From Pecten maximus (Eukaryota), in NCBI RefSeq assembly GCF_902652985.1, contig NW_022983034.1, forward strand, positions 1 to 64,000: 64,000 bases of DNA, written 5' to 3'. The position numbers and the translations under genes are program-made. The notes beneath the pieces were generated by a model. That model was not told where the DNA came from. It was given only the letters and a program-made list of their open reading frames with translations, and made no database searches. Positions within the stretch are counted from its first letter, which is position 1; every line of letters starts with the position of its first letter. Shown piece by piece: positions 2,741 to 58,605 of the stretch.

Positions 2741-4807
2741 ATGGCAGAGGCTCATGTAGACAATCGATCTTTCAAATGTCTGATATGTCTCCAGGAATGT
2801 AACACACCCCGACAGCTACCATGTTTTCACACGTTTTGCACGGGTTGTTTAAACACCTATATTAATTCTGAATACGTCACAGAATATAACAGGACGTACT
2901 TCCCCTGTCCGGTATGCGAAAGTCCGTGCTACCCTCACGACAAGGATGCTCCCGTTAGTTGTTGGGCCGGTTCGTTTCCTCGAAATCAGCTATTTGCTTC
3001 CTCAACGTTCAAAGAGACAGAATCAGGTCAGACATTCTGCCACGGATGTCTAACTGACGACGAAGAGAACGTTGCTTCCTTCTGGTGTAAAGCATGCTCG
3101 GAAGCCTTGTGTCAGCCATGTCGCATTGCACACCGACGAAGCAAATTACTTTCAACGCACAAAGTCATTGCCATAGACGAGGTTTCTAAGACGGATATAC
3201 GCATGCCTGTATTCATTGACAACACGTGTCCTCATCATACGGGAAAGACGATCGAAGTATACTGCCACGACCACAACGCCTTATGCTGTGTTCTGTGCGT
3301 GACACTGTCACATAGAAGGTGTACGAATGTTAGTAGCCTTGGAGATACTACAAAGATGTTCTCACTTGATGTCATCGAATGTGAGTTAGGCAAGATGAAG
3401 GACGAGTCAAAAACGATTGTCGAAGAGGACGAAAACAAACTGACCATTATCGAAGACGATTACCAGAAAATGACCAGCAATGTGGCCACGATGATCAAGA
3501 AAGCGAAAGATAAGCTGGATGATCTTCACAAACGTTTTCAAACCGGGTTAGACGTAACATACCGACGTCATCGAGAAAGTCTACATGAACGCTTACGCAC
3601 CAATAGGATATTTCAAGCAAACATTAAAAACACCAACCAACTGATGAGGGTGGTAAAAGGGAAAAGTCCTGACGTTGATACATTTATTGTAACGGAACAA
3701 TCCAAGACACAACTCCTAAGTCACGTGCGGCGTTTACAGCAGAGGACTGGAGACAAGCACAATACTTTTGAATTGAAGATGAGATATGACGACGTATTAG
3801 AGAAGGTCATCAACGTGGTGACAACTGTGGGAAGATTAGAAGTCTCCTCTTCATTGTCATCGTCATCACAAGACTCCCTCACATCTATCAGACAAACCAT
3901 TGACAAACTCCAGGCCACATCGTCCGTGACATCGTTTTCCGAATCAACGTCCTCCTCGGACATGTTGAGAGATGTAGGACACGTGGCAGTTCCATCTTCG
4001 TCAATAGCGCCTCGCATTGACGTGTGGACTGGGTCTTTATCTCTGGTCAAGTCTGTACATAAAGGTTCCATCGGTGGGTCAGTGACTCCATGTCTGACAG
4101 GAGGGATATTTATTGAAGGAGAATGTCTACTCGCTACAGACTACACAAACAAAAAACTTTTACTGTTTGATGATAGCTATGAGTATGTCAGGCATTATGA
4201 TGTGGATAACTGTCCTATTGATATCACATGTAGATTTGAACCGAATCAGTTACTAATGACCCAGCCAAATGGGTCAGTCATTAAGTATACATTTCGGGAT
4301 GGTGTCCTAACCACTGTCGACAGGATACGTAGTACTCAACAATGTTGGGGTATAGATATTCTGGGAGATAACATACTGCTCGGGACTGAAAGTTCTGTCG
4401 AGATTTTAACATCTGACTTTAAACAGGTAGCAGCCTCTATACCTAAACGCGGTTACAATACTTCCGTCGCCGCATCACCAAATAGACTCTTTTACCACGG
4501 AGATGAAGACGTCATCGTATGTCGGTCACATGATGGGAAGGAAGTGTTCCGGCATATGTGTAAAGGTATCAAAGAGCTACGAGGAATTGTTGTTGACCAG
4601 GATGGTAATGTATACGTATGTGGAATGGAGTCGGGAGACATACACCTGATATCACATGACGGCTCAAAGGATCGAATCCTTCTCCCAAGAATGTCTGGAA
4701 TCGCTCGACCGTACGCCATACTTCACCATCCAAGAAGACAGGAGATCATTGTGACATCATGGCAGGAAAACGTGGTGTTTGAAGTGTACAAGTTTTGTGA
4801 TCAGTGA
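2741..4807 (+). CDS. TRIM-NHL-type E3 ubiquitin ligase, copy 1 (intact, 688 aa)
   Basis: C3HC4 RING (CLIC..CFHTFCTGC..CPVC), B-box1 (CHGC..CKAC..CQPC..H..H), B-box2 (CPHH..CHDH..CVLC..H), coiled coil, Ser-rich linker, NHL-like blades (RGIVVDQDGNVYVC, RPYAI). No filamin domain is evident. Orthology cannot be assigned from sequence alone. Confidence 0.95.
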   Translation: MAEAHVDNRSFKCLICLQECNTPRQLPCFHTFCTGCLNTYINSEYVTEYNRTYFPCPVCESPCYPHDKDAPVSCWAGSFPRNQLFASSTFKETESGQTFCHGCLTDDEENVASFWCKACSEALCQPCRIAHRRSKLLSTHKVIAIDEVSKTDIRMPVFIDNTCPHHTGKTIEVYCHDHNALCCVLCVTLSHRRCTNVSSLGDTTKMFSLDVIECELGKMKDESKTIVEEDENKLTIIEDDYQKMTSNVATMIKKAKDKLDDLHKRFQTGLDVTYRRHRESLHERLRTNRIFQANIKNTNQLMRVVKGKSPDVDTFIVTEQSKTQLLSHVRRLQQRTGDKHNTFELKMRYDDVLEKVINVVTTVGRLEVSSSLSSSSQDSLTSIRQTIDKLQATSSVTSFSESTSSSDMLRDVGHVAVPSSSIAPRIDVWTGSLSLVKSVHKGSIGGSVTPCLTGGIFIEGECLLATDYTNKKLLLFDDSYEYVRHYDVDNCPIDITCRFEPNQLLMTQPNGSVIKYTFRDGVLTTVDRIRSTQQCWGIDILGDNILLGTESSVEILTSDFKQVAASIPKRGYNTSVAASPNRLFYHGDEDVIVCRSHDGKEVFRHMCKGIKELRGIVVDQDGNVYVCGMESGDIHLISHDGSKDRILLPRMSGIARPYAILHHPRRQEIIVTSWQENVVFEVYKFCDQ

Positions 4808-6574
4808 TTGGTGTAACTACACTGACTATCGAAATGTTTTCTGTGATTTCCACGATGTCTGTTTCACGAGGAATTAAATTAATTAATGTCACTTCATACT
4901 ATTTCATATAAGTTACGGGAATTATTTGTGCACTATCATTAATCATTAAACCTTAACCGAGTAACCAGTGTTTGATAACCAAGGGAAAAGGGAAACATTA
5001 ACATTATGGGTGCGCGATAGGGTATCCCACCCAAGGACTCGGTGTTTGATGTCCGGGCAAGCTATGGGCACTAACACGTACAGCCATTAGCGAGAACTAC
5101 TTTCAAATGTCGATACTAAACTGCAGTTTTCTTATTGATGTGAATATAAATCAAATGTATAAATGTTATCCTATACCAGTGCGTATAGATATACGATGTC
5201 GTGTAGGAGAGAATAGACAGACAACTGTTTATTTTCTACTAACATGTACTTAACTCCTCCGATTGTTAACCTGACGAAATATTTTTTCCTCACATGTACC
5301 GTGAAACGTAATTAAGTTTGACACGATATCTATTTCTGTGTGTATTTCTATAACTCATCATTTCCCTGTATCAACATAGAAAGTTTCTTTTGTTTACGCG
5401 TTGATAATGGGTGCAGTAGTTGCCCCATTTCGTAAATACTGAGCGCACATGTATACTTGTTACAGGAAAGTGAGAGAACAATACATCTGATAATTTAAAT
5501 AGGTCATTTAGAAGAACAATTAAGATCTTATATTCACAGATAATAAAACAGAGGTTCTATATGTCCGTGCGTCATAATAACCCATCTCAGGTTGGGTTGG
5601 AATAACACGGATACGTTTTGAAAAGCTGATTTCAACAAAAATCAGTTCTCAGTATAGCTAATTTTTATTATTTACTGGAAGGTTAGTTCGGAATGATATT
5701 CCGTAAGTGAAGGGTGGGTTGAGATTTCAAATTCGTAATCTGTATACACATTTTTGTTTAAGTTACCGTCACAGGTACAATTTAAGCAATTGAAATAATT
5801 AGTTAATATAAGATTGTGAATTGTCTATACACGTTACATGTACTTGTCAGTGCTGTGTTGTAATGTGGAAAGTACCTTGTCTAATTTAGTAACGCAGTGT
5901 CATGTACGTGTAGTCCATACTGTGTATGTCCATATTTGGTGGTGTTTACGACTTATATGTAAATTAGGGTATGAAAGTGTAAGAAATCGTGCAAGAGTGA
6001 GAGCGAGAATAGTAAAACCCGTGGGTTATGGTAGAACGCCGCAGTAGCCATTCATAGGTCGGTAGGACATATCCTCTGGGGTCCGGTGACCAATTATGTA
6101 ACAGACATGTGTACAGACTTACCGTTTTACCAGACATAACAGTCTTGGAAGGTATGTTATCCTGACAAATATAATAGAATGACTAATAATTATAACTTTA
6201 TTTAATAGATAGAATCATTACAGTCAGTTAATATGTTGTCGAGTACATGTAGGCTACGTATGTATATCATACAGGCTATTTTGTGTTTCAGAGGGTTTTC
6301 CTTTCGTATCAAGTTATGTCCTAATCTCCGGTAGTAAAATATAGAAAGAACCAGCAGGAGTGTGTTCGTTTTCCTTCCTGTGACATACTTTTAGAGCAAT
6401 GTAGACCATGTTGGACAATATTCTCGCTTTTGAGAGTTTTATCACAGGCGATACAAAAACCGTGCATTTGATACACAATATCAAGAGGTATGTCGACCTG
6501 TCATGTTGAAGAGTGACTTGACCATACTCGAATGTAACCTTACAATGGTGTGTCAAATGATTCATAAAACAACA

Positions 6575-6750
6575 TTTTCTGCAGTAACATTCTGTCCTGA
6601 CGTAATTGTCCAAATAAACTGTGCAAAATATGTGAAAGCACGAGTCGCAGGGAACTACAAATCTCAAGGCAAAGAAAACAATTGAAGGATGGACCTTTAG
6701 AACAAGTTAATTTTTCCGCAATAACCCTTTTGTGTCTAAAATGAAAAACG
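6575..6750 (-). pseudogene. RING-only remnant of the antisense TRIM paralog (unit 1)
   Basis: SFNCFLCLEICSSLRL / CFHIFCTVYLDNYVRTE aligns with SFKCLICLQECNTPRQLPCFHTFCTGCLNTYINSE. Confidence 0.75.
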
Positions 6751-9700: not shown

Positions 9701-9832
9701 GTCTATGATCAACCTTAATGGTACAGTGTACATTGTATAAGATTATACTTAGAATTAATCAGTGGCACTGATCAAAGACTAGTGAAATGATTTAAGTTTT
9801 GTTTTCAACTTGCAGATAAACAAGCAATAGGC

Positions 9833-12629: not shown

Positions 12630-13935
12630 AAATCCGCATATCCAATCTCCTCCAGTAAGCCATATTATCTGTGACCTCCAAAGTGTAGTAGAATGCACAA
12701 ATTTGACAAGATACGTGGACCCGGTCCATATGTCAACACGTGTCGGTTCCGCCGAAGACTGCATCTTCAACTGCTCTGCATCACTCACCATCTTTGACGA
12801 CGATGGTGCTGGTAAGGCTAACGTGGCGGTAATGTTTTGATTTCGTCGTCGATTTCCTCGATGAATGCAAGAGCAACCGATGAAAACGATGACAACGACG
12901 TTGTTATTTCTGGTTTTCCAACTGAAATCGTTGAGGTAAGAAGTGTGATAATTTTTTTTATCGAATTTCATCGTTAAAATATAACAGTTGTAATTATTAA
13001 TATATATATTTTGTAATCTCTGTTAAGAATGTGTGTTGGATACTTCACTGACAATACCTGTTCTGCGGTTGCGTTCGTTTAACACGTGGTTGTGTTCGTT
13101 TAACCACCTATGTGTGAGTATGCGACAAAGCCAGTGTCTTTTTGACATTGTATGTTCGATCGAGGTCATTTTGAAATCGAAAATGCAGCTCATCGACTTT
13201 ATCTTTGACGGTTTGTTTAGTCTTGTCACATTATTTGACATTGTTTAGTGATCTATGTCGAGGGCAAAATCTTTGGCTTCATCCTCTTTAATCATTATTC
13301 CTATTTCGTATTCCTGGCTGTTTAGCGCAAAGCCAATTCGTCTTGGTGCGAATTTTGTTACGGCGTCGTCCATAGATATCACCTGCTCGCATGAAACATG
13401 GTACTGACTCAAACTCAGCTTACAGCAAAGACTGTTGTTGTCTATGCAATATGTTTCTAATCTTTCCTTAATGTGTCGTGGACAATACTTTACCGACAAG
13501 TGTTTTACATTCTCGTGTTTATGCAAAGGAACCACTTTGTGCAGGGAAAGAAATGTACCGAGTTTGTGAGTCATTCGGCATTGATCAATCAGAGCTTCCA
13601 TGCATACGTTACACCAAAAAGAAGCACTCTTCTCTTTGTTGTGTAGCAAACACCCATAGCAGAATGCCTCACCCAGTTCTTCCTTGTCAGTTGAGTTTAC
13701 AAAAAGGGGAAGGGAAAAACTTAGTACACTGGTTCGAGGGTGTGTTCCCGGAAACTGGACAAGCCATATTTTCTGCAATAACATGTGCTCTCCTGACGTA
13801 ATTGTCCAAAACAAAAGCTGTGCAAAATATGTGAAAGCCCGGTAACATTCGCAGGGAACTACAAATGTCAAGACAAAGTAAGCAATTGAAGGATTGGCTT
13901 TTGGAACACGTACCATCACCTGTTCGTGCCTAAAA
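12630..13935 (-). pseudogene. Decayed, distantly related TRIM paralog on the opposite strand
   Basis: GEAFCYGCLLHNKEKSASFWCNVCMEAL..H..SLHKVV (B-box1), YCPRHIKERLETYCIDNNSLCC (B-box2) and RVDIWTGSTYLVKFVH..WLTGG (propeller start) are colinear with the + strand gene but contain stops and frameshifts. Confidence 0.88.
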
Positions 13936-19720: not shown

Positions 19721-20814
19721 TTGGTGTAACTGCACTGACTATCGAAATGATTTATATGATTTCTCCAATAGTTGTTTTACGCAAAATAAATACAATTCAA
19801 GTCACTTCATACTATTTCATATAAGTTACGGGAATTGCTTTGTGCACTCGTATTAATCTTTAAATCAGAATCGACCAGTGTGTAATAACAAGGGGAAAGG
19901 AAAAGACTAATATTATAGGTGCGTGATAGGGTATCCCACTCAAGGACTCAGTGTTTGATATCCGGGGCAAGCTATGAGCACTACTTCAAACGTCGATACT
20001 AAACTGCAGTCTCATTGATGTGAATAAATCAAATGCATAAATGTTATCCTATACCAGTGAGTATAGATATATTTACGATGTCGTGTAAGAGAGAATAGAC
20101 AGACGACTGTTTATCAAAGTTATTTTCTACTAACATGTACTTAACTTATTTGTTACTCGTCAAATTATTCCTCCGTTTGGTAACCTGACGAATTTTTTTC
20201 CCCTCACACATACTGTGAAACGTAATAAAGTTTGACATGATATCTATTTCTGTTTGTATTTCTATGACTTATCATTAATCTGTATCAACATAGAAAATTT
20301 ATTTGTTTACGCGTTGATAATGGGTGAAGTAGTTGCCCCATTTTGTAAATACTGAGCGCAAATGTATACTTGTTACAAGAAAGTGAGAGAACAATACATC
20401 TGATAATTTGAATAGGTCATTTGGAAGAACAATTAAGATATTATATTAACAGATCAAAAACAGAAGTTCTATATGTCCGTGCGTCATAATAATCCATCCC
20501 AGGTTGGGTTGGGTTGAAAAGCTGATGTTAACTAATTTTGATTACTTACTGGAAGGTTAGTTCGGAATGATATTCCGTAAGTGAAGAGTGTGTTGAGATT
20601 TCAAATACGTAATCTGTATACACATTTTTATTTAAGTTACTGTTAGAGCGATGTAGACCATGTTGGACAATGTTCTCGCTTTCGAGACTTTTCATCACAG
20701 GCGATACAAAAACCGTGCATTTGATACACAATTTAAAGAGGTATGTCGACCTGTCATGTTGAAGAGTGACCCGGCCATACTTACAATGGTGTGTCAAATG
20801 ATTTATAAAACATT

Positions 20815-20990
20815 TTCTGCAACAACATTCTGTCCTGACGTAATTGTCCATATACGCTGTGCTAAATATGTGAAAGCACGATCACAGTCGCAGGGAACTA
20901 CAAACTCAAGGCAAAGTAAGTAATTGAAGGATGGTCCTTTAGAACAAGTTCATGTTTCCACCATAACCCTTTCGTGTCTAAAACGAAAAA
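20815..20990 (-). pseudogene. RING remnant of the antisense TRIM paralog (unit 3)
   Basis: Homologous to 6575-6750, with the ATG and upstream ttttag acceptor retained. Confidence 0.7.
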
Positions 20991-21254
20991 CGAACATCCA
21001 GATACTTCTATTTTAATATTCCTTCAGTCGGGATATTATAATTATAATACCTTTCTTTGTTGGTGATTATTTTTCAATCATAGGTTATTAGGACATCAAT
21101 TTGCATTTACAGATGTGATACACTGTAATCTTTATGTTTACTCTAATAAAGTAAAGTCAATGGGATCGATTTGACTTGGAATTTTTAACATACTATTGAG
21201 TTGAATTAAACTAGGAACAAGATGCGTGATAATTACAACAAAATTAGTCATCTA

Positions 21255-21842
21255 TTTAAGCATTAAACTGTCTTGATTTGGCATCTCTGTTCGATATAAA
21301 TGACAGAGCTTTGCAGACAAACTGCATTATGACATGTTTGTCTGCAAAGCTCTGTCATTTATCTCGAACAGAGATGCCATATCAAGACAGTTTAATGCTT
21401 ATATTTACGTTTGATGAATTGTTTTTATCTAAAAAATATGTAGGTTTCGACTTATAATTTAAATTTCCCGCCTTATCGTCAATCGCGAAATTACCGTTTC
21501 AAAACTGGAACAGCCTTTCTTCTCACGTGCAGATTGCCACACAAAATAGTGCATACAAAAACGACAAAAATAATTATATTGGTTTTCACAATGTTTTATT
21601 TATTTTCATATTTTCTTTATTTGATGTGTTTTTGTCGATATTATACCATTTAGTTTAGTTGTTTCAAATTTCTTGTGTTTAGTTCAGAGTTCGATTCACA
21701 TTGGCCGCCATCTTTGTTTACATTGTACATGTATTCTTACGCACTGGAATCATGGCATGCTTTGGGTGTCAGTTATACTCTCATAGACAACACTTTGTTT
21801 TGGTTAGTTTATTTAGTGGCATTGTCAGGCAAATGTAAATAT
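21255..21842. mobile_element. Non-autonomous element with a terminal 66-bp hairpin and a sub-terminal inverted repeat (Crypton-like, tentative)
   Basis: Interrupts 'gtcatctata..gatagaagtca', which is intact in other units. Hairpin at 21257-21401, plus tatttacgtttg (21402) paired with caaatgtaaata (21830-21841). Confidence 0.72.
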
Positions 21843-23600
21843 ATTATTGATAGAAGTCAAACACACACAATAATGAAACAAATAGGGTTATTGATATATA
21901 AATTGTTGAAGATAACAATGAAAAACGTTAATGGTACAATTGATGCTCAATTTAGGTTAGAAAAAGAGCTTTTCAAATATTATTTTATTAACCAGCTTGA
22001 AAAAAATTTATCTCCTGCTCAAGATGAGCGATTTTCGTTAAAGGGACTAAATGGTTAGATTTCAATAATTTCTACATGCATTTGATTTCCGGAAAGCGTT
22101 GTGATACTTGAAATTAAATTGTTTACAAAATTATGACACTTTTTGTGAAATATTGGCAATGTTAATCAACTTCGAATTATCGCTGAACAACATTTGCTGT
22201 TTACATCGGAGAGAGCCGAGTGCGTCACATGATTTCAGTATCCTCGCTTTCACCCGACGAAAATGGAATCGAGGTAAGTGTAAACATTTTGTCACGTGGA
22301 TGTAGAACATGTGATTACTTTGCAATCGGACGGTCTCTAGGAATACCAATCGTTATTCGCTATTGTTGATTGAGAGCTCAAACAGATAAAAGTACGTATA
22401 ACCCTCAGAAGTAGCATGTGAAATTTTGACATTCGGCGATGGGGCCTCCAAAGGGGACTTCGTTTCGTTTATTGTGATCTAGGAAAATATTATCATTATT
22501 TATCTTTGAAGTGTTAATTCAATTCAATATCGTCCCAATGTAGGAAATCGAAGTGTACACTAAAATTGGAATTGCTATTTTGTATGACCGTAAGTGCTGT
22601 GACGACGTAACAGTTATACAGTTGTAACCAGACATATATGTCTCTGTTGTAACATACAAAAAAAAATAAAAAATGCCGATCACTAACGTGATAGGCCTAC
22701 CCAAATGTGAATTCGATTTAAATCTGATTAATGGAGATCTACATTGTAAATTGATTGCACTGAGTGCAATACACAAACTGTAAGTCTAGATATAAGAAAA
22801 AATAATTCAGTTTTACTCTGAAATTGTAATTTATTCGACTGTTTGAATTCCCTCGGCCTTTCAGATTGACATCCTAATTAAAAATCGGAACCTTCATTGA
22901 GTTAGTAGTTTTTGCACTTAACTTTGCTTCTGTTTAATGATTGTAGTTAAAATGTTGAAATTCTTGTACGTTATTTGATGAATTATATAATTAAATATGT
23001 ACGTTAAGAAATGGATAACACTGATACATGGTAAAAGATGGATATGAGTATTGTTGATTATCTCATTTATATCAATAATGTATTATCTCATTTATATCAA
23101 TTTATCATCGATATAAATGAGATATTTAATTCACAATACTGATGTCCATACTATTTTAATAATTCAATGATTAGCTGACAGTCTCAATGACAGTCATGGA
23201 TTGAGGAATTGGACTATTCTCAAGTTTACCTACATGTACAATTATGTTCATTTATATGTTACATTTTCTTGTATTTCAGTCAACCTCAATATCATCTTGA
23301 TTGGCAAGTCAGCAGAGCATGCAGTCTAACTATATATGGGTAGAGGTCAAGGTGACAGGAGTAAATAAAATATAGAAATCGTGAAAATTTAAGCATTTTA
23401 TTGGTAATCACGTTATCTGTTTGCCCATACACATAAGCTGAATTATCTTATTTCAAGGAAGTTGTTTTGACACCTGTGCAGTGAAAAGGTTTGATATAAA
23501 ACCAAAATAAATTACATTACATCATTGACTTCATGGAAACCTTTTGTTTTATTTACCATATTTCATATGCATCAGTTTTCACTGATACTGGCTTATGTAA

Positions 23601-24086
23601 AACAAGAGGCCCATTGGCCTTAATGGTCACCTGAGTTTTGAAATATTCAATTTAATTGACCCTTTTTAGCCTTGCCCATCAGCCCAGAAGGTCAGTCAGG
23701 GTCAACATGTGCATGCCATCAAGCTGTCATCCAATGCTGATAATGTTAATGAAGTTAGAATGAATTTCAATAGAAATCAAACAAATGCTGATCAAAATTG
23801 TGATTTCCCTATATAAATTTTAGTCCCCCCTCAGGGTCATGAAATTCCAAATTTTTGTTAAAGACACCAGTATATGATTCTACCATATCTGCGAGCTGAG
23901 AAGATCTTTTAAATTTTAGTCAATTTGACCCTTTCTGACCCTGCCCCTCAGGTCCCTGGGTGTTGGGACTATGTAATTCACAGTTTTGGTTGACCTTTTG
24001 ACCATGAAAGCTTACTGACAAATTGTTTAAAGAGAAACAACGCAGTTAGAATAGGTCACTTCATACTTCATCTCAGGTGACCTAAA
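23601..24086 (-). mobile_element. HINE (non-autonomous Helentron-like) element nested in the Kolobok
   Basis: aacaagaggcccattggcct palindrome, sub-terminal inverted repeat ggtcacctgag...ctcaggtgacc and an A-tract end. Confidence 0.72.
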
Positions 24087-24344
24087 GATACAACCCTAAT
24101 TTATCAGAATATCAACAGAACAGTGACTTATGATGTTGATAATACACAAAACAGTAAATGCACAGTACAGTTTGTCTCACAAATAGTTTTGATATAGAAA
24201 ACATTGAGAAAAGTCAAACATGCAAATAAAGAATTTACCACATTGTATTTATTGTCTTGCTTAGATGTAAGCATTGGCATCAATGACTAGAGAAAGTTGA
24301 CTGCCATGACTACGTAGTGACTTAACATCAATGACAATTGTTGG

Positions 24345-24615
24345 CATCAGTGATAATTGAGTGTTGACATCAATGACTATTGAGTATTATGGAGTGTTGA
24401 CATACATGACTATTGAGTATTAGTGAGTGTTGACATAAATGATTATTGAGTATTAGTGAGTGTTGACATATATGACAATTGAGTATTAGTGAGTGTTGAC
24501 ATAAATGACTATTGAGTACTAGTGTGTGTTGACATTAAAGACTATTGAGCACTAGTGGGTGTTGACATCAATGAATTTTGAGAGTTTATAAATTACTTGT
24601 GAGTGTTAACATGAA
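24345..24615. repeat. Minisatellite, 33-bp unit, about 7-8 degenerate copies
   Basis: gagtgttgacataaatgactattgagtattagt recurs at 24425, 24458, 24491 and onward. Confidence 0.9.
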
Positions 24616-24805
24616 TATTTCAATTGTGCACACATGTACAGCTATGAATAATCATTTTTGACTAAGCATTTAAATTTCAGACCAGACAATGTTGTTTGTC
24701 TCTTGAGATCATATAAATTTCGAAATGAAGGCTGCACTGATTTAATATCATATGACATTTATGGAATGGATAACATTAAGCTATTATAGTAACATTATAC
24801 CAATA

Positions 24806-25420
24806 AACTAAAGGCCCAGAGGGCCTGCATCGCTAACCTGGATAATTCAGTAATGATGGCAAAATACTCAAATTTAAGTTTCATTTCAAACATTTTTCTA
24901 CTTTTGAACTACCTCTCCCAACAATGGTTCAAACAACAAGTGGACTAGATGTAATTCTTGGAAAAAAAATGAGTTAAATCTGTTTTTTTTTTTTTTGCTA
25001 TACCAGGTAATTCTCTTATTTTGCCCCGAAAGGTGCCACTCAGATGATGGTGACGCTTCATTTATGCAACATATAACATTGCCACATAATTCTCCTGACC
25101 AAATTTCATCAAATCCATTTAATTGTTCAGGACTAGTAGAATTTCTAAAAGGGTTTCCATTCTGACCAGTGAACTAAAAACATGTTAATAATAAGACCAT
25201 TACAAAGGGCAATAACTCTGCAAACTACTGTCCAATAATTTCCATTTTTGAAGTTGTCTGAGATCTTGTCAATATATGGCTGCGTATAAAGTTTTATCAA
25301 ATTTGGTATATTCTGACATTTACTCAAGTTATTCAAATATTGTGTTCACAATGTTGACAGACGAATGCCGGACGCCTCAGTATGGCATACTCACCTTGGT
25401 CCTTCGGACCAGGTCAGCTA
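24806..25420 (-). mobile_element. Second HINE-like element nested in the Kolobok
   Basis: aggcccagagggcct palindrome, gctaacctgg...ccaggtcagc sub-terminal inverted repeat and a tggtcc-ttc-ggacca hairpin. Confidence 0.65.
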
Positions 25421-25495
25421 CTAAACGTAAGGACAGATATTCAAAAGTAATAGTCTCTGGAACATGATTAGTCTCAAAATTTCAATTATTCCCAT

Positions 25496-25740
25496 TCATC
25501 TTAATTGGGATTTCTTCTCCTCTACCATTTGGACAGTAGATGGTGGAGGAGCATGGGCTAGGAGTTTGAATATTCTGGGATCTATTTGATGCAAGGGTTT
25601 TGGCTAGATATTCCAGTTCTATCTGTTATTCTGTTGGCCACTATCAGATTGATGAGTCCCTGGATGTGTTGGTATGTCCTTTCCACCTTGTACGGCACTA
25701 TTGTCCTCCGAGAACTTTTGTGTTATAAATCCTGTGATAT
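25496..25740 (-). pseudogene. Decayed last exon of a probable Kolobok transposase
   Basis: A polypyrimidine acceptor precedes YHRIYN/KSSRRTIVPYKVERTYQHIQGLINLIVANRITD../LHQIDPRIFKLLAHAPPPSTVQMVEEKKSQLR*, read across two frameshifts. Family assignment is by motif recall, not by search. Confidence 0.6.
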
Positions 25741-26365
25741 CTATAAGAAGAAAAAAAAGATATTTTCTTACACAAAATCAATGTAATTTCCAGTTACACA
25801 AACCAACAAAATGTGCAAAATTGGCAATATTATAATCATGCCTTATATTGAAACATAGCAGTCATTATTTATCATGCAAAGATGGCTCTTCACGATATCT
25901 TGTCTGATATTTCATCAAATAATGTGCCTGTCAACATTTTCTCAACTCACATGCAAGCTTAATTAGCCTCTACACATAATCAAGGCTTCTGCTGGGTCTT
26001 AAATATGTATACCAGTATCAATAGTTGAAAAAGGTAAATTCAACACAACATACGCTTACGCTTTCAGGCCTAATGACCATCTTAAGGCATGATATTGTAT
26101 ATGTGACATCATAATGTGGTATCCAAGACGTCAAATAAATGAAGCGCATGAAGATGGCCATTAGGCCCGAAAACACCATGGGAAATAACTTAACTAACTA
26201 TGGTGTTATTACATTAATTTGGTGAATCAATCACTATCAATATGTAATGCAAAAAAAAAAAAAAATTATTACTAAATTCACAAAATTGATACTCCAGAAG
26301 TTTTTCAATCTCCAATTGCACAATATCTTACCAAATACACTAAGAACTCAGCAATTTTCAACAAG

Positions 26366-26483
26366 TGTTAACAGTAGCGGCCAGACCGGGGTTCCAACTC
26401 TGACCTCCGAACACCAGCCGGATGCTCTACCAACTATTGAGTTACCTGGTCACTGATGATCGACTCAGTCCAGTCCCGCTACA
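26366..26483 (-). mobile_element. Short tRNA-derived repeat (SINE head or tRNA-containing mini-LTR)
   Basis: Minus strand shows degenerate A-box (taactcaatagttggtagagc) and B-box (gagttggaaccc) motifs, enclosed by a gtagcgg/ccgctac inverted pair. Confidence 0.55.
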
Positions 26484-32864: not shown

Positions 32865-34417
32865 TTGGTTTAACTACATTGACTATCGAAATGTTTCATA
32901 TGATTTCTACAATGGGTGTTTTACGAGAAATAAATACAATTCAAGTCACTGCATTCTACTTCATATAAGTTACGGAAATTGTTTTGTGCTCTGGTATTAA
33001 TAATTTTTTCTTCATCGACTATTCAGTGTGTAATAGGCAATCAAATGCATAAAGCTTGAGTATAAATATATGTCAGGTAGGAATGACGAAATTAAAATAA
33101 GTTTCTACTAACATCTTGTTTGTTTCAAATTATTCATCCGATTGTTAACGTGACGAAATCATTGTTACGTCACATGTAATGGGAAACGTAATAAAAGTTG
33201 TACAGGATATCACTTTCTGTGTGTACTTCTATGACTTATCATTTATCTGTATCAACATAGAAAAGGTCTGTCTTCAGAGAAGTCAGAATTAACCCGTAAA
33301 TATAACTTGAACTTCTATTACATATTTGGTTTGGGTTTTGAATTTCGACAGCTATGGTCATTGACTTGTATGTGAGGGATACATGCGTGTAGTAACTGTT
33401 TGTGTGTTTGAGACTACAGTATGTCCGTGCGTGTCTCTTTGTGATAGCGGGGAATTTATCTCTGATTTAATTTTTGATCTCAAAATATATCATTGTTAAC
33501 ATAACAAGGATAATGCAAATAGGTATAACATAGAAAATGTATAGAATATATATAGAAAATAAATCAGTACAGACAACTATTCCTGTGGCAGAGGAATTAG
33601 TTGAATTTTTTTTTCTTTTTTTTCTTTTTAACATATAAATTTAATACGTAGTTAATACGTAACTTGTTAAAATAAGCTGGTAAGATTATCCCCCTCACAT
33701 ATAAATTACTTATATAATTACATATATTACATATATAATTACTTTTATAAATATAAGACAGCTACTGATTTTTTTCACCTCCCTTTCAATTTAAATCCTC
33801 TGTCTTTTTGTGAATCGTCTACTGCCGCTTTTTTCCGCATTGTTTTATTTTACTTATATACACTATTATTATCCACGCATACAGTCGCAAGCACCATATG
33901 GACTCCCCAGACCATATATACATCCAGTCAAGCCCGGCAAAACCATTAAGTACTGTACCTTACGGAAGCAGTGACGTCCTGGACTGTCGGACGTAACTGG
34001 TGGTCTTAGGCCCGGGGTCCATAACAGACAAAATATTTACCGCCCCTATTTGACCACCAATCTACAAACAATAATTTCTCTTTTGAACATACATACATAT
34101 ATACCCATATTCTATTTTGTAAAGATAACTAACATACATATAAAGATAAGTTTTTATTTAATTATAAAGTTAGCCTTTTGGCTCCCTTCGGTCGCCCTCC
34201 CACGACAAGAAAACTATAACTTGGAAATATTTCTGCACCACAATAGAGCGACTGGCGTACATGGGCTTGCCCAAAACGCTACACCCCATGATTTGTTCTA
34301 TAAACATTTACAGGAGTTCGATTATAATTATCAGTCGATACCACAACACAATTGGCAGTAATCCATGAAATGAGTAAGTGGTATGACAATGCAAGAAATA
34401 TCGTATGTATAAGCTGA

Positions 34418-34590
34418 AACGCCGAAATGGCAGCTCCGAATGTATGTTCGCCAGGGAGTTGAGAAAGACATTGACTGGTTGTTAAAATCCAAATAACCAC
34501 AGAAAAGAATTTGTGAAACACTTTAAGGCGGTTATGTTGCTGTGATATAACTGTATATAATATTTCAAGCTATTATCATCATTATATTTT
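34418..34590 (+). mobile_element. Degenerate SINE 3' fragment
   Basis: cgccgaaatggcagc..tgtatgttcgccagggagttgag followed by a (tat/cat)n tail, resembling invertebrate SINE bodies from recall. Confidence 0.4.
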
Positions 34591-35984
34591 CCTATTGAAA
34601 TCTTCTGTTGATACATTTTGTTTTCATCTTCATTTGAGATTAAGGTTTTGTTTTTCACATCGGTTTTCTCTTAATATATCATAGGAGAGGTCAGAAATAA
34701 TTAAGAATTATCTAATTAGTTTCTTAAGGCATTTCAAAGAGCCTCAATTATATGAAATATCGGCACTTTTCGTTACACTTTTGTCTTGGCTTGTAGTAAC
34801 ACAGGTAATATAATTTTTAGTTGAAAGCATTTGTTGAAATTCAATCATCGATTTTTGATGGGAACATATTTACTCCGTGTTGTCTCCCTTAGCACGGAAA
34901 CGAGGCGCACAAAGTGTCATGCAGACGTCTGTTCTTAGGCAAAACGGTGTAAGTATATCCATATATAGGCATATATTCAACACAATAGATGTTGGTTGTG
35001 TGTTCTTCTTTTGTTTTATATACAGTAATGTGTAAGATTATAAGATTGTCTGTGTAGTCAACAGCATAAACTGAAAATACATTAATTCTCACGGTTTCTA
35101 CTGAGGACCAAAATCGCGTTTGTTTGCACACCCATGTACAACGTGTTTTGTTTTATATCACGTCTTAGATAAGATTAAAACATTTCAATGATTGTGATGT
35201 ATGTGTTTGTATACCGTTGTGGAACAGGTGTCTGTACCGGAAGTGGAGTGAATCTTTAAACGTCTGTTGTTTTTTAATGTACAATCCTGTTATAGGTATA
35301 TGGAAATCGAAAGTACAGACAAGGGTTTCCCGTGTAAATTTATTGTTTTTTATTGATGCTCAACAACGATTAGTTGTTGGATATCAGACCTATGTTTCAC
35401 TTAAGTTTAAACAATTTATGGCTATTTTAACCACAGAATAAGCAAAATCTACACGTTTACACAGGCAAATGTTTGCCAGATACCAATGTTTACAAAAATA
35501 TGTCCCAACAGTTACCAGCCAACTCCGACCTCAAAATAACTAATTACACTCCTAAGCAATAACGAATTCATTTTTGTTTTTAAATACTTTAAAAAGGTAA
35601 TATGGTTATAATGGCAACATACATTTTTATTATGTTTTCTACAGAAACTGGAAGGAAACCTACAAACGCTAATATTCTAGAGTACATATACATACTGTTG
35701 ACAGATATTTTCATACAAAACCCCAACAATATAATAATTCAATTATTTGACTTGTCAATATCCTATCTTCAAGTGATTTGTCTATATTTTGTAACACCAC
35801 TAAACGTTATATCTTACACTTAATTATAAAGTAATCGTTCTGTGGTCTTTGATCAAACTTGTCGTTGTCAAGTTTATGGCATATTGTTAAACATGATATT
35901 TATAATTAATCAGTAGAAATTATAAAACACTCGTGAAATGATTTATGTTTTCGATTTTTACTTGCAGATACAACAACAATAGTC

Positions 35985-38054
35985 ATGGCGGAGGCTCTTA
36001 TAGACAATCAACCCTTCAAATGTCTGATATGTCTCCAGGAATGTAACATACCCCGACAGCTACCATGTTTTCACACGTTTTGCACCGGTTGTTTAAACAC
36101 CTATATTAATTCAGAATACGTCACAGAAGATAACAGGACGTACTTCCCCTGTCCGGTATGCGAAAGTCCGTGTTACCCTCAAAACAAGGATGCTCCCGTT
36201 AGTTCTTGGGCCGGTTCGTTTCCTCGGAACCAGCTGTTCGCTTCATCAACGTATAAAGAGACAGAATCAGGTCAGACATTCTGCCACGGATGTCTAACTG
36301 ACGACGAAGAGAACGTTGCTTCCTTCTGGTGTAAAGCATGCTCGGAAGCCTTGTGTCAGCCATGTCGCGTTGCACACCGACGAAGCAAATTACTTTCAAC
36401 GCACAAAGTCATTGCCATAGACGAGGTTTCTAAGACGGATATACGCATGCCTGTATTCATTGACAACACGTGTCCTCATCATACGGGAAAGACGATCGAA
36501 GTATACTGCCACGACCACAACGCCTTATGCTGTGTTCTGTGCGTGACACTGTCACATAGAAGGTGTACGAATGTTAGTAGCCTTGGAGATACTACAAAGA
36601 TGTTCTCACTTGATCTCATCGAATGTGAGTTAGAAAAGATGAAGGACGAGTCAAAAACGATTGTCGAAGAGGACGAAAACAAACTGACCACTCTCGAAGA
36701 CGATTACCAGAAAATGACCAGCAATGTGGCCACGATGATCAAGAAAGCGAAAGATAAGCTGGATGATCTTCACAAACGTTTTCAAACCGGGTTAGACGTA
36801 ACATACCGACGTCATCGAGAAAGTCTACATGAACGCTTACGCACCAATAGGATATTTCAAGCAAACATTGAAAACACCAACCAACTGATGAGGGTGGTAA
36901 AAGGAAAAAGTCCTGACGTTGATACATTTATTGTAACGGAACAATCCAAGACACAACTCCTAAGTCACGTGCGGCGTTTACAGCAGAGGACTGGAAGCAA
37001 GCACAACACATTTGAATTGAAGATTAGATATGACGACGTATTAGAGAAGGTCGTCAACGTGATGACAACTGTGGGAAGATTAGAAGTCTCCTCTTCATTG
37101 TCATCGTCATCACAAGACTCCCTCACATCTATCAGAAAAACCATTGACACACTCCAGGCAACATCGTCCGTGACATCGTTTTCCGAATCAACGTCCTCCT
37201 CGGACATGCTGAGAGATGTAGGACACGTGGCAGTTCCATCTTCAGTCAGTAGCGCCTCGTATTGACGTGTGGACTGGGTCTTTATCTCTGGTCAAGTCTG
37301 TACATAAAGGTTCCATCGGTGGGTCAGTGACTACATGTCTGACAGGAGGGATATTTATTGAAGGAGAAGGGTCTACTCGCTACAGACTACTACAAACAAA
37401 CAACTTTTACTGTTTGATGATAGCTATGAGTATATCAGGCATTATGATGTGGATAACCTTCCTATTGATATCACACGTGGATTTGAACCGAATCAGTTAC
37501 TAATGACCCAGACAAATGGGTCAGTCATTAAGTATACATTTCGGGATGGTGTCCTAACCACTGTCGACAGGATACGTAGTACTCAACAATGTTGGGGTAT
37601 AGATATTCTGGGAGATAACATACTGCTCGGGACTGAAAGTTCTGTCGAGATTTTAACATCTGACTTTAAACAGATAGCAGCCTCTATACCTAAACGCGGT
37701 TACAATACTTCCGTCGCCGCATCACCAAATGGACTCTTTTACCACGGAGATGAAGACGTCATCGTATGTCGGTCACATGATGGGAAGGAAGTGTTCCGGC
37801 ATATGTGTAAAGGTATCAAAGAGCTACGAGGAATTGTTGTTGACCAGGATGGTAATGTATACGTATGTAGAATGGAGTCGGGAGACATACACCTGATATC
37901 ACATGACGGCTCAAGGGAGAGAGTCCTTCTCCTAAGAATGTGTGGAATCACTCGACCGTACGCTATTGTTCTCCATCCAACAAGACAGGAGATCATTGTG
38001 ACGTCATGGCAGGAAAACGTGGTGTTTGAAGTGTACAAGTTTTGTGACCAGTGA
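35985..38054 (+). pseudogene. TRIM-NHL copy 5, three +1 insertions (pseudogene or consensus error)
   Basis: ORFs 35985-37265, 37267-37503 and 37449-38054 tile one gene. Single-base insertions lie near 37245, 37369 and 37390, and the span is copy 1 plus 3 nt. Confidence 0.75.
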
Positions 38055-39844
38055 TTGGTGTAACTACACTGATTATCGAAATGTGTTCTGTGATTTCCAC
38101 GATGTCTGTTTCATGAGGAATTAAATTAATTAATGTCACTACATACTATTTCATATAAGTTACGGGAATTGTGTGTGCACTAGCATTAATCATTAAACCT
38201 TAACCGACTAACCATTGTTTGATAACCAAGGGGAAAAGGGAATGATTAACATTATGGGTGCGCGATAGGGTATCCCACCCAAGGACTCTCAGTGTTTGAT
38301 GTCCGGTTCAAGCTATGAGCACTAACACATACAGCCATTAGCGAGAACTACTCTCAAACGTCGATACTAAACTGCAGTCTTCTTATTGGTGTGAATAAAT
38401 GAAATGTATAAAAGTTACCCTATTCCAGTGCGTATATATTTACGATGTCGTGTAGGAGAGAATAGACTGACAACTGTTTATTTTCTACTAACATGTACTT
38501 AACTTATTGTTACTTAATTATTCCTCCGATTGTTAACCTGACGAACTATTTTTTCCTCACATGTACCGTGAAACGTAATTAAGTTTGACACGATATCTAT
38601 TTCTGTGTGTATTTCTATGACTTATCATTTCTCTGTATCAATATAGAAAATTTATTTTGTTTACGCGTTGATAATGGGTGAAGTAGTTGCCCCATTTTGT
38701 AAATACTGAGCGCAAATGTATACTTGTTACAGGAAAGTGAGAGAACAATACATCTGATAATTTAAATAGGTCATTTAGAAGAACAATTAAGATCTTATAT
38801 TCACAGATAATAAAACAGAGGTTCTATATGTCCGTGCGTCATAATAACCCATCTCAGGTTGGGTTGGAATAACACGGATACGTTTTGAAAAGCTGATTTC
38901 AACAAAAATCAGTTCTCAGTATAGCTAATTTTTATTATTTACTGGAAGGTTTGTTCGGAATGATATTCCGTAAGTGAAGGGTGGGTTGAGATTTCAAATT
39001 CGTAATCTGTATACACATTTTTGTTTAAGTTACCGTCACAGGTACACTTTAAGCAATTGAAATAATTAGTTAATATAAGATTGTGAATTGTCTATACACG
39101 TTACATGTACTTGTCAGTGCTGTGTTGTAATGTGGAAAGTACCTTGTCTAATTTAGTAACGCAGTGTCATGTACGTGTAGTCCATACTGTGTATGTCCAT
39201 ATTTGGTGGTGTTTACGACTTATATGTAAATTAGGGTATGAAAGTGTAAGAAATCGTGCAAGAGTGAGAGCGAGAATAGTAAAACCCGTGGGTTATGGTA
39301 GAACGCCGCAGTAGCCATTCATAGGTCGGTAGGACATATCCTCTGGGGTCCGGTGACCAATTATGTAACAGACATGTGTACAGACTTACCGTTTTACCAG
39401 ACATAACAGTCTTGGAAGGTATGTTATCCTGACAAATATAATAGAATGACTAATAATTATAACTTTATTTAATAGATAGAATCATTACAGTCAGTTAATA
39501 TGTTGTCGAGTACATGTAGGCTACGTATGTATATCATACAGGCTATTTTGTGTTTCAGAGGGTTTTCCTTTTGTATCAAGTTATGTCCTAATCTCCGGTA
39601 GTAAAATATAGAAAGAACCAGCAGGAGTGTGTTCGTTTTCCTTCCTGTGACATACTTTTAGAGCAATGTAGACCATGTTGGACAATATTCTCGCTTTTGA
39701 GAGTTTTATCACAGGCGATACAAAAACAGTGCATTTGATACACACTATAAAGAGGTATGTCGACCTGTCATGTTGAAGAGTGACTTGACCATACTCGAAT
39801 GTAACCTTACAATGGTGTGTCAAATGATTCATAAAACAACATTT

Positions 39845-43000: not shown

Positions 43001-43088
43001 ATACTTAGAATTAATCAGTGGCACTGATCAAAGACTAGTGAAATGATTTAAGTTTTGTTTTTAACTTGCAGATAAACAAGCAATAGGC

Positions 43089-50100: not shown

Positions 50101-50133
50101 TGTTTTTAACTTGCAGATAAACAAGCAATAGGC

Positions 50134-52201: not shown

Positions 52202-52871
52202 TTGGTGTAACTACACTGACTATCGAAATGTTTTCTGTGATTTCCACGATGTCTGTTTCATGAGGAATCAAATAAATTAATGTCACTACATACTATTTTA
52301 TATAAGTTTCGGTAATTGTTTTGTGCACTAGCATTAATCATTAAACCTTAACCGACTAACCAGTGTGTGATAACAAAGGGAAAAAGGGAAAGATTAACAT
52401 TATGGGTGCGCGATAGGGTATCCCACCCAAGGACTCTCAGTGTTTGATGTCCGGTCCATCTATGAGCACTAACACGTACAGCCATTAGCGAGAACTACTT
52501 TCAAACGTCGATACTTAACTGCAGTCTTCTTATTGATGTGAATAAATGAAATGTATAAATGTTATCCTATCCCAGTGAGTATAGATATACGATGTCGTGT
52601 AGGAGAGATTAGACAGACAACTGTTATTTTCTAACATCTACTTATCTGATATGTTTCTTATCAAATTATTCCTCCGATTGCGATTGTTAACCTGACGAAA
52701 TCATTGTTACGTCACATGTAATGGGAAACGTAATAAAAGTTTTACAGGATATCACTTTCTGTGTGTACTTCTAAAACTTATTGTTTATTATTTATCTGTA
52801 TCAACATAGAAAACGTCTTACTCCAGAGAAGTGAAAATTAACCCGTAAATATACCCTCGATTTTAAACATA

Positions 52872-53120
52872 TTTGGTTTTGAATTTCAACAACTATGGTC
52901 ATTAAACTTTATGTGAGATATACATGCGTGTAGTAACTGTTTGTGTATTTTGGGGAGACTAAAGTATGTTTGTCTGTGTTTCTCTTTGTGATAGCGGAGA
53001 ATTGATCTAACAGGCTAAGGCTATATTAGACCTTTCCTATAAGTTCCTGTAGAAACGATGCCGGATTTATAGTGTTACCTCATTGAAATACACTGCCGAG
53101 GACATGTAGAAGGACACACC
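52872..53120 (-). mobile_element. Degenerate SINE-like fragment (partial homolog at about 33326-33460)
   Basis: tatagtgttacctcattgaaatacactgccgaggacat resembles bivalve SINE sequence from recall. The left part is shared with the copy-4 3' flank. Confidence 0.35.
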
Positions 53121-54117
53121 TTGACCTAGTTTCAGGTCGTTATTTTACATTTGAAAGTAATCGTTAGTCGACTGATGGTTATTCAATAACAATGTCCATA
53201 TGTATCACGGCGTTTTAGCCGTATATACCATGTGGAGTGGACGGACGGACGGACGTACGGCCGGTTGTGACCGAGGTTCGAGAGAGACTGCCCGCCGATA
53301 ATGGGTGAACCAATCGCCTAATGTCGAAAATGCTGAGCGCAAATAAATATTTGTTACAAGAAAGTTAGAGGATAATAATTTAATTTTTCTTGTAACAAGC
53401 ATTTTCATTGGCTCAAAAAATTATGGTATCATCTCATAACATAAAAAAAAATAAACTGTGACGTCATCGGAGTAATCGTTGTTCACGGGATTTTGTATTT
53501 ATCGATGCGTTTTTAAATATCTGGAGCAAAATAAACATGTTAAACTTTATGAAAATGTTTCTTATCGTTGTTAATTAAATTATAAGGGTTAACTGTAATA
53601 TTTGTTTTACGTTATTGAGCAATAACACAAAAAAACTGGGGTGTTCTCTTTTCATAAAAACCCTTAAATGCATCTGATACATTATAGAGCTTATTCAAAT
53701 TTCACTATCAACTACTTATTTGAAGTCATTTTGAAGGAACAATTAAGATATTATATTAGCATCTCAAAAAAACGGATACGTTTTGAGAAACTGAATTCTC
53801 AGTATACCTTATTTTCACTAGTCCGTTAATTTGGAATATTCTGTAAATGAAGTTCTTTGAAAACAAATCGTAAGGTAGCAGTGTACAGTAAAAATGTGTC
53901 TCTGTTACATAGAATTTTCAGGGATGTCAACAGCATTGAAGATGCATGTACAGTAAAAATGCCTAATTCTGAAAAAAATAAGGCACACGTTTTAAATAAG
54001 CCCTGTTAAACATAAATATTACCTAAACTGAAGTATATATATTTGTAATCTATGCAACCTTTGCAATTTAAATACAGCCGTGAAGTATGAGTATTCTGTA
54101 ACGGATGTTACCTGATG

Positions 54118-54985
54118 ACGAAGACAACGTATCCATTGACAACACGTGTCCTCCTCATACGGGAAAGACGATCGAATTATACTGCCACCACCACAACGCC
54201 TTATGCTGCGTTCTTCGCGTGTCTCTGTTACATAGAACTTTCAAGGATGTCAATAGCATTGACGATACTACAAAGTCGTTCCCGTTTGATTTTATAGAAT
54301 ATGTGTTTAGCAAGATGAGGGACGAGTCAAAAACGATTGTTGAAGAGGACGAAAACAAACTGGCCACTCTAATCGCCGATTGCCAGACAGTGACCAATAA
54401 TGTTGCTGCGGTGATCAAGAAAGCGAAAGATAAGCTTGACGACCTCCACCGTAGTTTTCAAACCGAGCTTGACGTGACATACCAACGTCATAAAGATAGT
54501 CTAAATGATCGATTACACACCAAGAAGATATTCCATGCGAACGTGGAGAATACCAACCAGCTAAAGGTGGTGATTAAAGAACGATTTTATGACAGTCAGA
54601 CGTTTATTGCAATGGAACAATCCAAAATACAACTTACAAAACACGTGCGACGTTTACAATAGAGGACCAACGACAAACACTTTTGAACTAAATCTTACGT
54701 ATGACGACTTATTAGAGAAAGTCATTAACGTGATGACAACTGTCTGAGGATTAGATGTCTGCTCTTTCTTGTCATTGTCCTCGTACGACTCCCTCACCGA
54801 GACAGTTCGTGTGGACTGGAGATCCGTCGCTGCTCAATTCTGTTCAGAAATTTTCTATCAGAGGGGCAGAGACTCCATGGCTAACACGAGGAATGTTTAT
54901 TAAAGGCGACGGTCTTATTTTTCCGGACTTTAACATCTAAAGACCGTACGATGATAACTTAGACTATATAAGACATTACGATGTA
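54118..54985 (+). pseudogene. Older, divergent TRIM fragment (B-box2, coiled coil, start of propeller)
   Basis: SIDNTCPPHTGKTIELYCHHHNALCC...KHVRRLQ* followed by frameshifted VWTG..TPWLTRG. No RING or B-box1. Confidence 0.9.
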
Positions 54986-57245: not shown

Positions 57246-57248
57246 ACG

Positions 57249-58605
57249 CTGACCGCTCTCGAAGACGATTACCAGAAAATGACCAGTAATGTGGCCATGA
57301 TGATCAAGAAAGCGAAAGATAAGCTGGATGATCTCCACCAACGTTTTCAAACGGGTCAGACGTAACATACCGACGTCATCAAGATAGTCTACATGAACGC
57401 TTACGCACTAATAGGATATTTCAAGCAAACATTGAAAACACCAACCAACTGGTGAGGGTGGTCAAAGAAAAAAGTCCCGACGTTGATACATTTATTGTAA
57501 CGGAACAATCCAAGACACAACTTCTGAGACACATGCGGCGTTTACAGCAGAAGACTGGAGACAAACACAACACATTTGAATTGAAGATGATATATGACGA
57601 CGTATTAGAAGTCATCAACGTGATGACAACTGTAGGAAGATTAGAAGTCTCCTCTTCATTGTCATCGTCATCACATGACTCCCTCACATCTATCAGACAA
57701 ATCATTGACACACTCCAGGCCACATCGTCCGTGACATCGTTTTCCGAATCAACGTCCTCCTCGGACATGCTGAGTGATGTAGGACACGTGGCAGTTCCAT
57801 ATTCATCAGTAGCGCCTCGTATTGACGTGTGGACTGGGTCTTTATCTCTGGTCAAGTCTGTACATAAAGGTTCCATCGGTGGGTCAATGACTCCATGGCT
57901 GACAGGAGGGGTATTTATTGAAGGAGAGGGTCTACTCGTTATAAACTTCCAAAACAAACAACTCTTACTGTTTGATGATAGCTATGAGTATATCAGGCAT
58001 TATGATGTGGATAACCATCCTATTGATATCACACGTGGATTTGAACCGAATGAGTTACTGATGACCCAGATGGGTAGGTCAGTCATTAGGTGTACATTTC
58101 GGGATGGTGTCCTTACCACTGTCGGCAGGATAAGTAGTTATCTCAGTCAATGGGGTATAGATACTCTGGGAGATAAGATACTGACCGGGACTATAGGTTG
58201 TGTCGAGTTTTAACATCAGACTTTAAACAAGTAGCGTCTATACCTAAACGCAGTAATAGTACGTTCGTTGCCGCATCACCAAATGGACTCTTTTACCACA
58301 AAGACGAAGACGTCATCGTATGTCGGTCACTTGATGGGAAGGAAGTGTTCCGGCATATGTGTAAAGGTATCAAAGAGCCACGAGGAATTGTTGTTGACCA
58401 GGATGGTAATGTATACGTGTGTGGAATGGAGTCGAGAGACATACACCTGATATCACATGACGGCTCAAAGGAGGGAGTCCTCTCAAGAATGTGTGGAATC
58501 ACTCGACCGTACGCCATACTTCACCATCCAAAAAGACAGGAGATCATTGTGACGTCAAGGCAGGAAAACGTGGTCTTTGAAGTGTACAAGTTTTGAGACC
58601 AGTGA
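57249..58605 (+). pseudogene. 5'-truncated TRIM-NHL copy (coiled coil to C-terminus)
   Basis: Starts mid-coiled-coil (ctgaccgctctcgaagac). Has 1-nt deletions near 57352 and 58208 and a TGT-to-TGA change three codons before the normal stop. Confidence 0.92.

Follow-up and report, generated by a model that had tools for sequence, protein, structure and literature searches.

TRIM5 is an antiviral restriction factor, and the fast-evolving multigene TRIMs of vertebrates that are under positive selection carry B30.2/SPRY. The known NHL propellers, those of Brat and LIN-41/TRIM71, bind cellular RNAs via their top face. Molluscs are without adaptive immunity and are subject to viral mass mortalities. 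In fish, the ftr, btr, and hltr sets have undergone tandem multigene expansion, their B30.2 loops are under positive selection by partition-based tests, and they have been linked to virus sensing or restriction (PMC3137616). In the Pacific oyster, loci linked to herpesvirus survival include TRIM genes, in a paper that is not about the scallop family considered here (PMC9437489), and passages in two other papers describe bivalve immune families as expanding through tandem duplication (PMC6835236, PMC10279657). Here, we describe an array of TRIM-type genes in the scallop Pecten maximus in which diversifying selection on one face of a C-terminal propeller is well supported. The window, meaning the whole stretch analyzed, is the first 64 kb (positions 1 to 64,000) of a 100.6-kb unplaced contig, NW_022983034.1 (label C3905), of an AT-rich genome. 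Using blastn with copy 1 (C1, the first open reading frame [ORF]) as the query against the window, we found 11 gene copies (C1 to C11) in tandem arrangement, repeating about every 7.1 kb. The coding part of these genes has no intron. Of these, C1, C2, C4, and C6 are intact, C11 is intact but extends past the end of the window, and the other six are broken or partial. The chromosome-scale contig C15 carries four further copies at 32.94 to 32.97 Mb, of which one is intact. These 15 copies, 11 on C3905 and 4 on C15, constitute the clade of the array and have 76 to 100% amino acid identity to C1.

C1 (positions 2741 to 4807, + strand) is an intact gene of 688 amino acids that illustrates the architecture. 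Pfam places a RING at 2777 to 2917, B-box1 at 3035 to 3166, and B-box2 at 3221 to 3316; a model from AlphaFold2 (AF2) places a coiled coil at about 3365 to 3748, a Ser-rich disordered linker at about 3821 to 4027, and the propeller at 4028 to 4804. The RING matches PF00097 with 24.8 bits (cutoff, 21) and PF13445 with 25.9 bits (cutoff, 25.2). It is of the C3HC4 type, and its Cys and His ligands are invariant in 21 family members. PF00643 matches two B-box stretches with 26.7 bits (cutoff, 24.1), and B-box1 matches PF22586 below its cutoff. In the full-length AF2 model, helices at residues 209 to 308 (100 residues) and 311 to 336, with a predicted local distance difference test score (pLDDT) of about 70 to 81, resemble TRIM coiled coils, and the Ser-rich linker at residues 393 to 423 is predicted to be disordered. 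The coiled coil would dimerize and the RING would recruit an E2. There was no Pfam match to a filamin domain, the region between the coiled coil and the propeller being Ser rich and predicted to be disordered. There was also no Pfam match to a SPRY (B30.2) domain, and the C-terminal domain is modeled as a propeller. AF2 of residues 430 to 688, from an alignment of 18 family members, gave six four-stranded blades with a pLDDT of 90.9. In a Foldseek search with this model, the human TRIM2 NHL domain was the top PDB match, with a template modeling (TM) score of 0.81 to 0.84, and the best PDB matches were the NHL domains of TRIM2 and Thin (TM, 0.73 to 0.84). A six-bladed NHL-type propeller is thus supported by structure prediction as the C-terminal domain. 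The closest proteins outside this genome all belong to other scallops (Mizuhopecten, 63%; Ylistrum, 59 to 60%; Argopecten, 41%), and tens of further paralogs occur within the genome at 25 to 40% identity.

An earlier reading of this DNA, made from the letters alone (the sequence-only reading), had listed short series of variable motifs and had placed them in loops on one propeller face. The quoted series (e.g., SVTPC/SKTPR before LTGG, ATDYTN/VINFQN, TQPNG/TQIDS, and KRGYNTS/YCGNNLY) are all present in frame-projected translations. Strands A to D of each blade were assigned from the DSSP string alone, and the D-A and B-C loops, 63 codons in total, were taken as top loops. In this strand order, every quoted segment falls in a D-A or B-C loop. 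The geometry of a four-stranded antiparallel meander puts these two loops at one end of the blade by necessity, and in propellers this end is conventionally called the “top” face, the RNA-binding face of Brat and LIN-41. Many of the quoted variants belong to the broken copies C3, C5, C7, C9, and C10. The RING, B-boxes, and linker had also been called almost invariant. They are constrained, with dN/dS (nonsynonymous to synonymous rate ratio) values of 0.33 to 0.5, but they are not invariant, as residues 1 to 429 have 88 to 94% amino acid identity among intact copies.

Identity among the intact copies falls to 75 to 84% in the propeller and to 56 to 78% in its top loops, with 80 to 94% in the bottom loops. 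Eighteen codons encode at least four amino acids among the copies; of these, the propeller has 17, and 12 belong to the 63 codons of its top loops. Codon 491 is TGT, AGT, CTT, CGT, CAT, or GGT depending on the copy. This gives six amino acids with a constant third base and invariant neighboring codons. Even C1 and C6, at 99.5% identity, differ at this hypervariable codon. A short list of candidate specificity positions for binding and swap experiments includes codons 447 to 451, 469, 491, 550, 572 and 573, 587, 611 to 613, 629 to 632, 649 to 652, and 674 to 679.

Pairwise dN/dS values by the method of Nei and Gojobori (NG86) were 0.33 to 0.5 for the RING, B-boxes, and coiled coil (RBCC) with the linker and 0.7 for the propeller, and dS in the propeller was only about 1.5-fold higher. 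The RBCC part is under purifying selection. We then divided the codons by structural class, with intervals from a codon bootstrap. The top loops had a dN/dS of 1.10 (95% interval, 0.67 to 1.84; dN, 0.207; dS, 0.187), the bottom loops 0.29 (dN, 0.057; dS, 0.195), the strands 0.69 (dN, 0.090; dS, 0.131), and the N-terminal 429 codons 0.38 (dN, 0.045; dS, 0.119). Because dN is high in the top loops only and dS is alike in the bottom loops, the excess in the window clade is nonsynonymous and confined to one face.

Trees of different segments are strongly incongruent. C2 and C11 group together in the RING region (bootstrap, 100), and in blades 1 to 4, C11 groups with K15c, one clade copy on contig C15 (bootstrap, 94 to 98). 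The pairwise homoplasy index (PHI) test for recombination was significant (P < 0.001). Since the segment trees are incongruent and the PHI test is significant, we fitted codon models by maximum likelihood with a program of our own (Goldman-Yang type, F3x4) that gives every partition a separate tree but uses common omega (dN/dS) classes. For the propeller in 14 copies with three partitions, the likelihood ratio test (LRT) statistic was 27.4 for M1a versus M2a (P = 1e-6), 34.6 for M7 versus M8 (P = 3e-8), and 26.4 for M8a versus M8 (P = 1.4e-7). Six blade-wise partitions gave an LRT of 28.1 for M1a versus M2a (P = 8e-7), and the same comparison on the six intact genes only gave 15.1 (P = 5e-4). 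The N-terminal 429 codons, used as a control, gave 4.4 (P = 0.11). M2a assigned 16% of the propeller codons to a class with an omega of 2.7, and M8 assigned 21% to a class with an omega of 2.4. In 12 simulations under M1a on six blade trees, analyzed with three partitions so that recombination was deliberately undermodeled, the LRT was at most 3.3.

Twelve sites had a posterior above 0.8: 447, 451, 469, 491, 530, 547, 581, 613, 649, 652, 674, and 679. Seven of them are in top loops (Fisher P = 0.01), sites 530 and 613 adjoin a top loop, and site 679 is two residues off. Synonymous density per synonymous site was 0.73 at the selected codons versus 0.64 in the rest of the propeller. As this density is the same as elsewhere in the propeller, the selected codons are not mutational hot spots. 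The sequence-only reading had called for recombination-aware site models, and these did find a propeller class with dN/dS above 1 (LRT, 27.4 to 34.6). Its expectation of such a ratio in the loops is borne out for a subset of codons in the site models but not for the top loops of the window clade as a class.

A sister clade, about 40% identical to the window clade, served as a replicate. Its loci are at C12:10.32-10.57 Mb, C12:16.47-16.71 Mb, C17:17.40 Mb, C17:21.29 Mb, and on C270, with at least nine intact and several broken copies. The set analyzed comprised nine intact paralogs from contigs C12, C17, and C270, which are 86 to 94% identical to the query clade member. For the propeller of this clade, the M0 omega was 1.0, and M2a placed 11.5% of codons at an omega of 7.0 (LRT, 92; P = 1e-20); the N-terminal control gave a P value of 0.27. 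The top loops, as an a priori class, had a dN/dS of 1.95 (1.30 to 3.41). Twelve of 18 selected sites were in top loops (P = 9e-5). Sites 469, 491, and 679 were selected in both clades, and per-site posteriors correlated between them (rho, 0.32; P = 1e-7). The sister clade repeats the pattern of the window clade, and more strongly.

Recombination or gene conversion between copies, including broken copies and those on the other chromosome, reassorts the loop patches. The patches recur as blocks, in varying combinations, in intact and broken copies and on both C3905 and C15. For the patch shared by C11 and K15c, no other donor was found in the assembly. Compensated frameshifts were considered as a source of the radically different patches and rejected; the patches differ by in-frame substitutions and by in-frame indels of 3, 6, and 9 bp.

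Variable loops could also arise by relaxed constraint only, with tolerant surface loops drifting neutrally, pseudogenes decaying, and no positive selection. The top-loop ratio of 1.10, whose interval spans 1, would fit this, as would a tree-free minimum spanning tree (MST) count for the top loops, which gave a ratio of 0.90, and the broken or partial state of 6 of the 11 window copies. However, M8a, with its neutral class, is rejected against M8 (LRT, 26.4), and the signal is retained when only intact genes are used (LRT, 15.1). With the same dS, the equally exposed bottom loops reach a dN/dS of 0.29, nine intact genes of the sister clade give a top-loop ratio of 1.95 (1.30 to 3.41) and an LRT of 92, and even the youngest pair, C1 and C6, differs at codon 491. 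Relaxed constraint alone is therefore improbable in our judgment. That the N-terminal half recombines too, without a signal, argues against a mutational artefact, in which conversion tracts and multinucleotide mutations would give clustered changes or homoplasy that are misread as dN/dS above 1. Recombination is indeed pervasive, and codons 531 to 535 and 465 to 469 differ by adjacent-nucleotide blocks, whole blocks of which are common to several copies, as such an artefact would have it. Yet three and six partition-specific trees gave the same results, the M1a simulations on six trees analyzed with three did not exceed an LRT of 3.3, and the selected codons show no increase in synonymous density. 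Several of the selected sites consist of one codon between invariant flanks, and the assembly holds no outside donor of the C11/K15c patch. We consider this artefact highly improbable.

A different question is whether real diversifying selection could have a nonimmune cause, with the propeller face tracking fast-evolving endogenous partners, for example RNAs from transposons or the germline, selfish elements (including meiotic drive), or cues for self versus non-self. Binding of cellular RNAs by the top face of Brat and LIN-41/TRIM71 would suit such a role, and nothing in the window connects these genes with infection. The evidence on the other side is by analogy only, namely the virus sensing or restriction linked to tandem-expanded, positively selected fish TRIM subsets (PMC3137616) and the association of oyster TRIM loci with herpesvirus survival (PMC9437489). 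A nonimmune cause seems doubtful to us.

Taken together, we believe that the whole is probably best explained by a young, lineage-specific array with a constrained RBCC part, a diversifying propeller face, and variable target recognition. The evolutionary part of this explanation, which comprises positive selection on one propeller face, birth-and-death, and recombination, is very likely. The pattern-recognition or restriction-factor role under pathogen-driven selection put forward in the sequence-only reading is an analogy with other TRIMs, and the chances of an immune or antiparasite role are about evenly balanced. In this explanation, a tandem array of intronless TRIM-type genes, young and lineage specific, grows and decays by birth-and-death. 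Selection diversifies the D-A/B-C loop face of the propeller while the RBCC part is kept constrained, and recombination or gene conversion between copies reshuffles loop patches and has homogenized some upstream spacers. The variable face may pick the target, so that different copies would steer ubiquitination or signaling to different fast-changing ligands. By analogy with TRIM5 and the finTRIMs, the likeliest ligands would be components of viruses or other intracellular parasites.

Several points weigh against this explanation. The top loops of the window clade as a whole class are compatible with neutrality (1.10; 0.67 to 1.84), and only the site-class tests are significant. These tests come from our own implementation, with relative branch lengths fixed from M0 or IQ-TREE and not fitted by PAML or HyPhy. 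The “one face” is derived from strand order and not from exposure measured on coordinates. The Pfam NHL model scored 15.7 bits in one copy, versus a cutoff of 20, and did not match another. With 9 of the 15 clade copies broken or partial, part of the diversity is in dead genes. C3905 could represent a haplotype of the C15 array that has diverged strongly, in which case some “paralogs” would be alleles. Four RNA-Seq runs of one study contain 33 to 55% of the C4 31-mers and possible RNA runs of other studies contain 17 to 54%, in both cases as words partly shared with other copies; the case for expression of array copies, from shared 31-mers only, is weak.

Pseudogenes and fragments make up the majority of the copies, so that the array has the character of birth-and-death and not of a clean repertoire. 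All window copies except C9 are on the + strand. Among the intact genes, C2 (9833 to 11896) encodes 687 amino acids, as does C4 (30801 to 32864), the most distinct intact copy of the window. C6 (43089 to 45125) encodes 678 amino acids and is the near twin of C1; a 30-bp in-frame deletion in its linker, at nucleotides 1228 to 1257 of the coding sequence (CDS), removes ten disordered Ser-rich residues and keeps the frame. C11 lies at 63602 to 64000 within the window and ends at position 65674 of the contig. It has a 9-bp insertion and a blade-2/3 patch that is unique in the window. Three further copies are pseudogenes. C3 (17684 to 19720) has a 4-bp deletion at CDS nucleotide 310, a 17-bp deletion near its 3′ end, and, in the B-C loop of blade 1, the in-frame loss of 6 bp. 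C5 (35985 to 38054) has three 1-bp insertions, at CDS nucleotides of about 1259, 1383, and 1404. C7 (50134 to 52201) has a 1-bp insertion at CDS nucleotide 473 and a change of RING Cys59 to Tyr. C8 (54129 to 54915) is a diverged fragment with B-box2 and coiled coil, at 75 to 78% identity to C1. C9 (56198 to 57245, − strand) is an inverted partial copy that covers the 3′ half and carries both a 2-bp insertion and a stop codon, and C10 (57249 to 58605) is a partial copy from about codon 234 with frameshifts and a stop codon. C9 and C10 stand back to back at the array end, in a local rearrangement with inverted arms of about 330 to 400 nucleotides at 97% identity and about 400 nucleotides between them.

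The spacers between the copies had earlier been described as near identical. This is true of the 1.5 kb upstream of five copies and false for most downstream DNA. The upstream regions of C1 (1241 to 2740, + strand), C2 (8333 to 9832), C6 (41589 to 43088), and C11 (62102 to 63601) are mutually 99.1 to 99.4% identical, and the C7 upstream region matches them at 97.7%. The 1.5 kb downstream has 73 to 84% identity in most pairs, the exception being the pairs among C1, C5, and C6. Coding sequences of units with near-identical upstream DNA differ by up to 7 to 8%, and C1 and C2, with 92.6% coding identity, are below the identity of their upstream DNA. Upstream noncoding DNA that is more alike between units than the coding sequence is the reverse of the usual pattern. 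It suggests that recent unequal crossing-over or conversion has homogenized the promoter-proximal DNA only. Because the upstream 1.5 kb is near identical but the coding and downstream DNA has diverged, the array units are mosaics of differing ages, and the coding regions retain older, reassorted variation. The spacer after C2 has an ORF at 13245 to 13919 (− strand) with a B-box match below the cutoff (22.5 versus 24.1 bits), and this looks like a remnant of a different TRIM gene. The spacers at 19721 to 30800, which is much longer than a standard unit, and at 52202 to 54128 have no ORF of at least 150 amino acids.

The C4-C5 pair, 5.2 kb apart (30478 to 38224), matches both C15:32940996-32948787 and C15:32965384-32972835 with 92 to 93% identity over 7.5 to 7.8 kb. 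Such spaced pairs on C15 imply that a two-gene unit has been duplicated between or within the two arrays. C3905 as a simple haplotig of the C15 region was rejected, as the best identity is 92 to 94% and the copy layout is different.

It is possible, and we put this forward tentatively, that scallops, perhaps bivalves generally, encode in the germline a propeller-based repertoire of variable intracellular receptors, made up of dozens of RBCC-NHL E3 ligases spread over several arrays. The selected top-face patches would be reassorted by gene conversion, with the broken copies as a patch reservoir, and the copies would recognize different viral RNAs or proteins. If true, such a repertoire would match TRIM5 and the finTRIMs in function while using a different fold. 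It would extend intracellular immunity with a constant effector and a variable recognition domain to a new fold and to molluscs. An NHL-type propeller is here in a fast-evolving role, and two clades of one genome diversify the same face. In full-text literature searches, we found no paper that describes this scallop family and none in which the propeller of a TRIM-NHL protein is shown to be under positive selection.

Among known systems, plant NLR/R-gene clusters, KIR, and the bivalve C1qDC and TLR expansions are, like the scallop array, birth-and-death tandem clusters with many pseudogenes and with gene conversion or unequal crossing-over. In such clusters, as here, the recognition surface diverges more than the noncoding flanks. 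NLR, KIR, C1qDC, and TLR proteins have other folds and cellular locations, whereas the scallop proteins are without a signal peptide or leucine-rich repeats (LRR) and are predicted to be cytosolic E3 ligases. With TRIM2, TRIM3, TRIM32, TRIM71/LIN-41, and Brat, the array shares the RING, the B-box, and a predicted coiled coil; its C-terminal propeller is of the NHL type as modeled, and the scallop variable loops correspond to the face that binds ligand in Brat and LIN-41. TRIM2, TRIM3, and TRIM71 have a filamin/Ig domain between the coiled coil and NHL, whereas TRIM32 does not, and the array has no filamin match. Canonical TRIM-NHL genes have animal-wide orthology and low copy number; in contrast, the array consists of many recent paralogs whose nearest outside relatives are scallop only, at 41 to 63%. 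The finTRIMs (ftr), btr, hltr, and primate TRIM5alpha share with the array a constrained RBCC scaffold of the E3-ligase type. They also share lineage-specific tandem expansion, positive selection in the loops of the recognition domain, and recombination between copies (PMC3137616). Their recognition domain, however, is a B30.2/PRY-SPRY beta-sandwich, whereas that of the scallop array is modeled as a six-bladed NHL-like propeller. The antiviral function of TRIM5 is documented, whereas an antiviral role of the scallop array is suggested by analogy. The evolutionary regime of the array is like that of TRIM5 and the finTRIMs, here on an NHL-type propeller in a mollusc.

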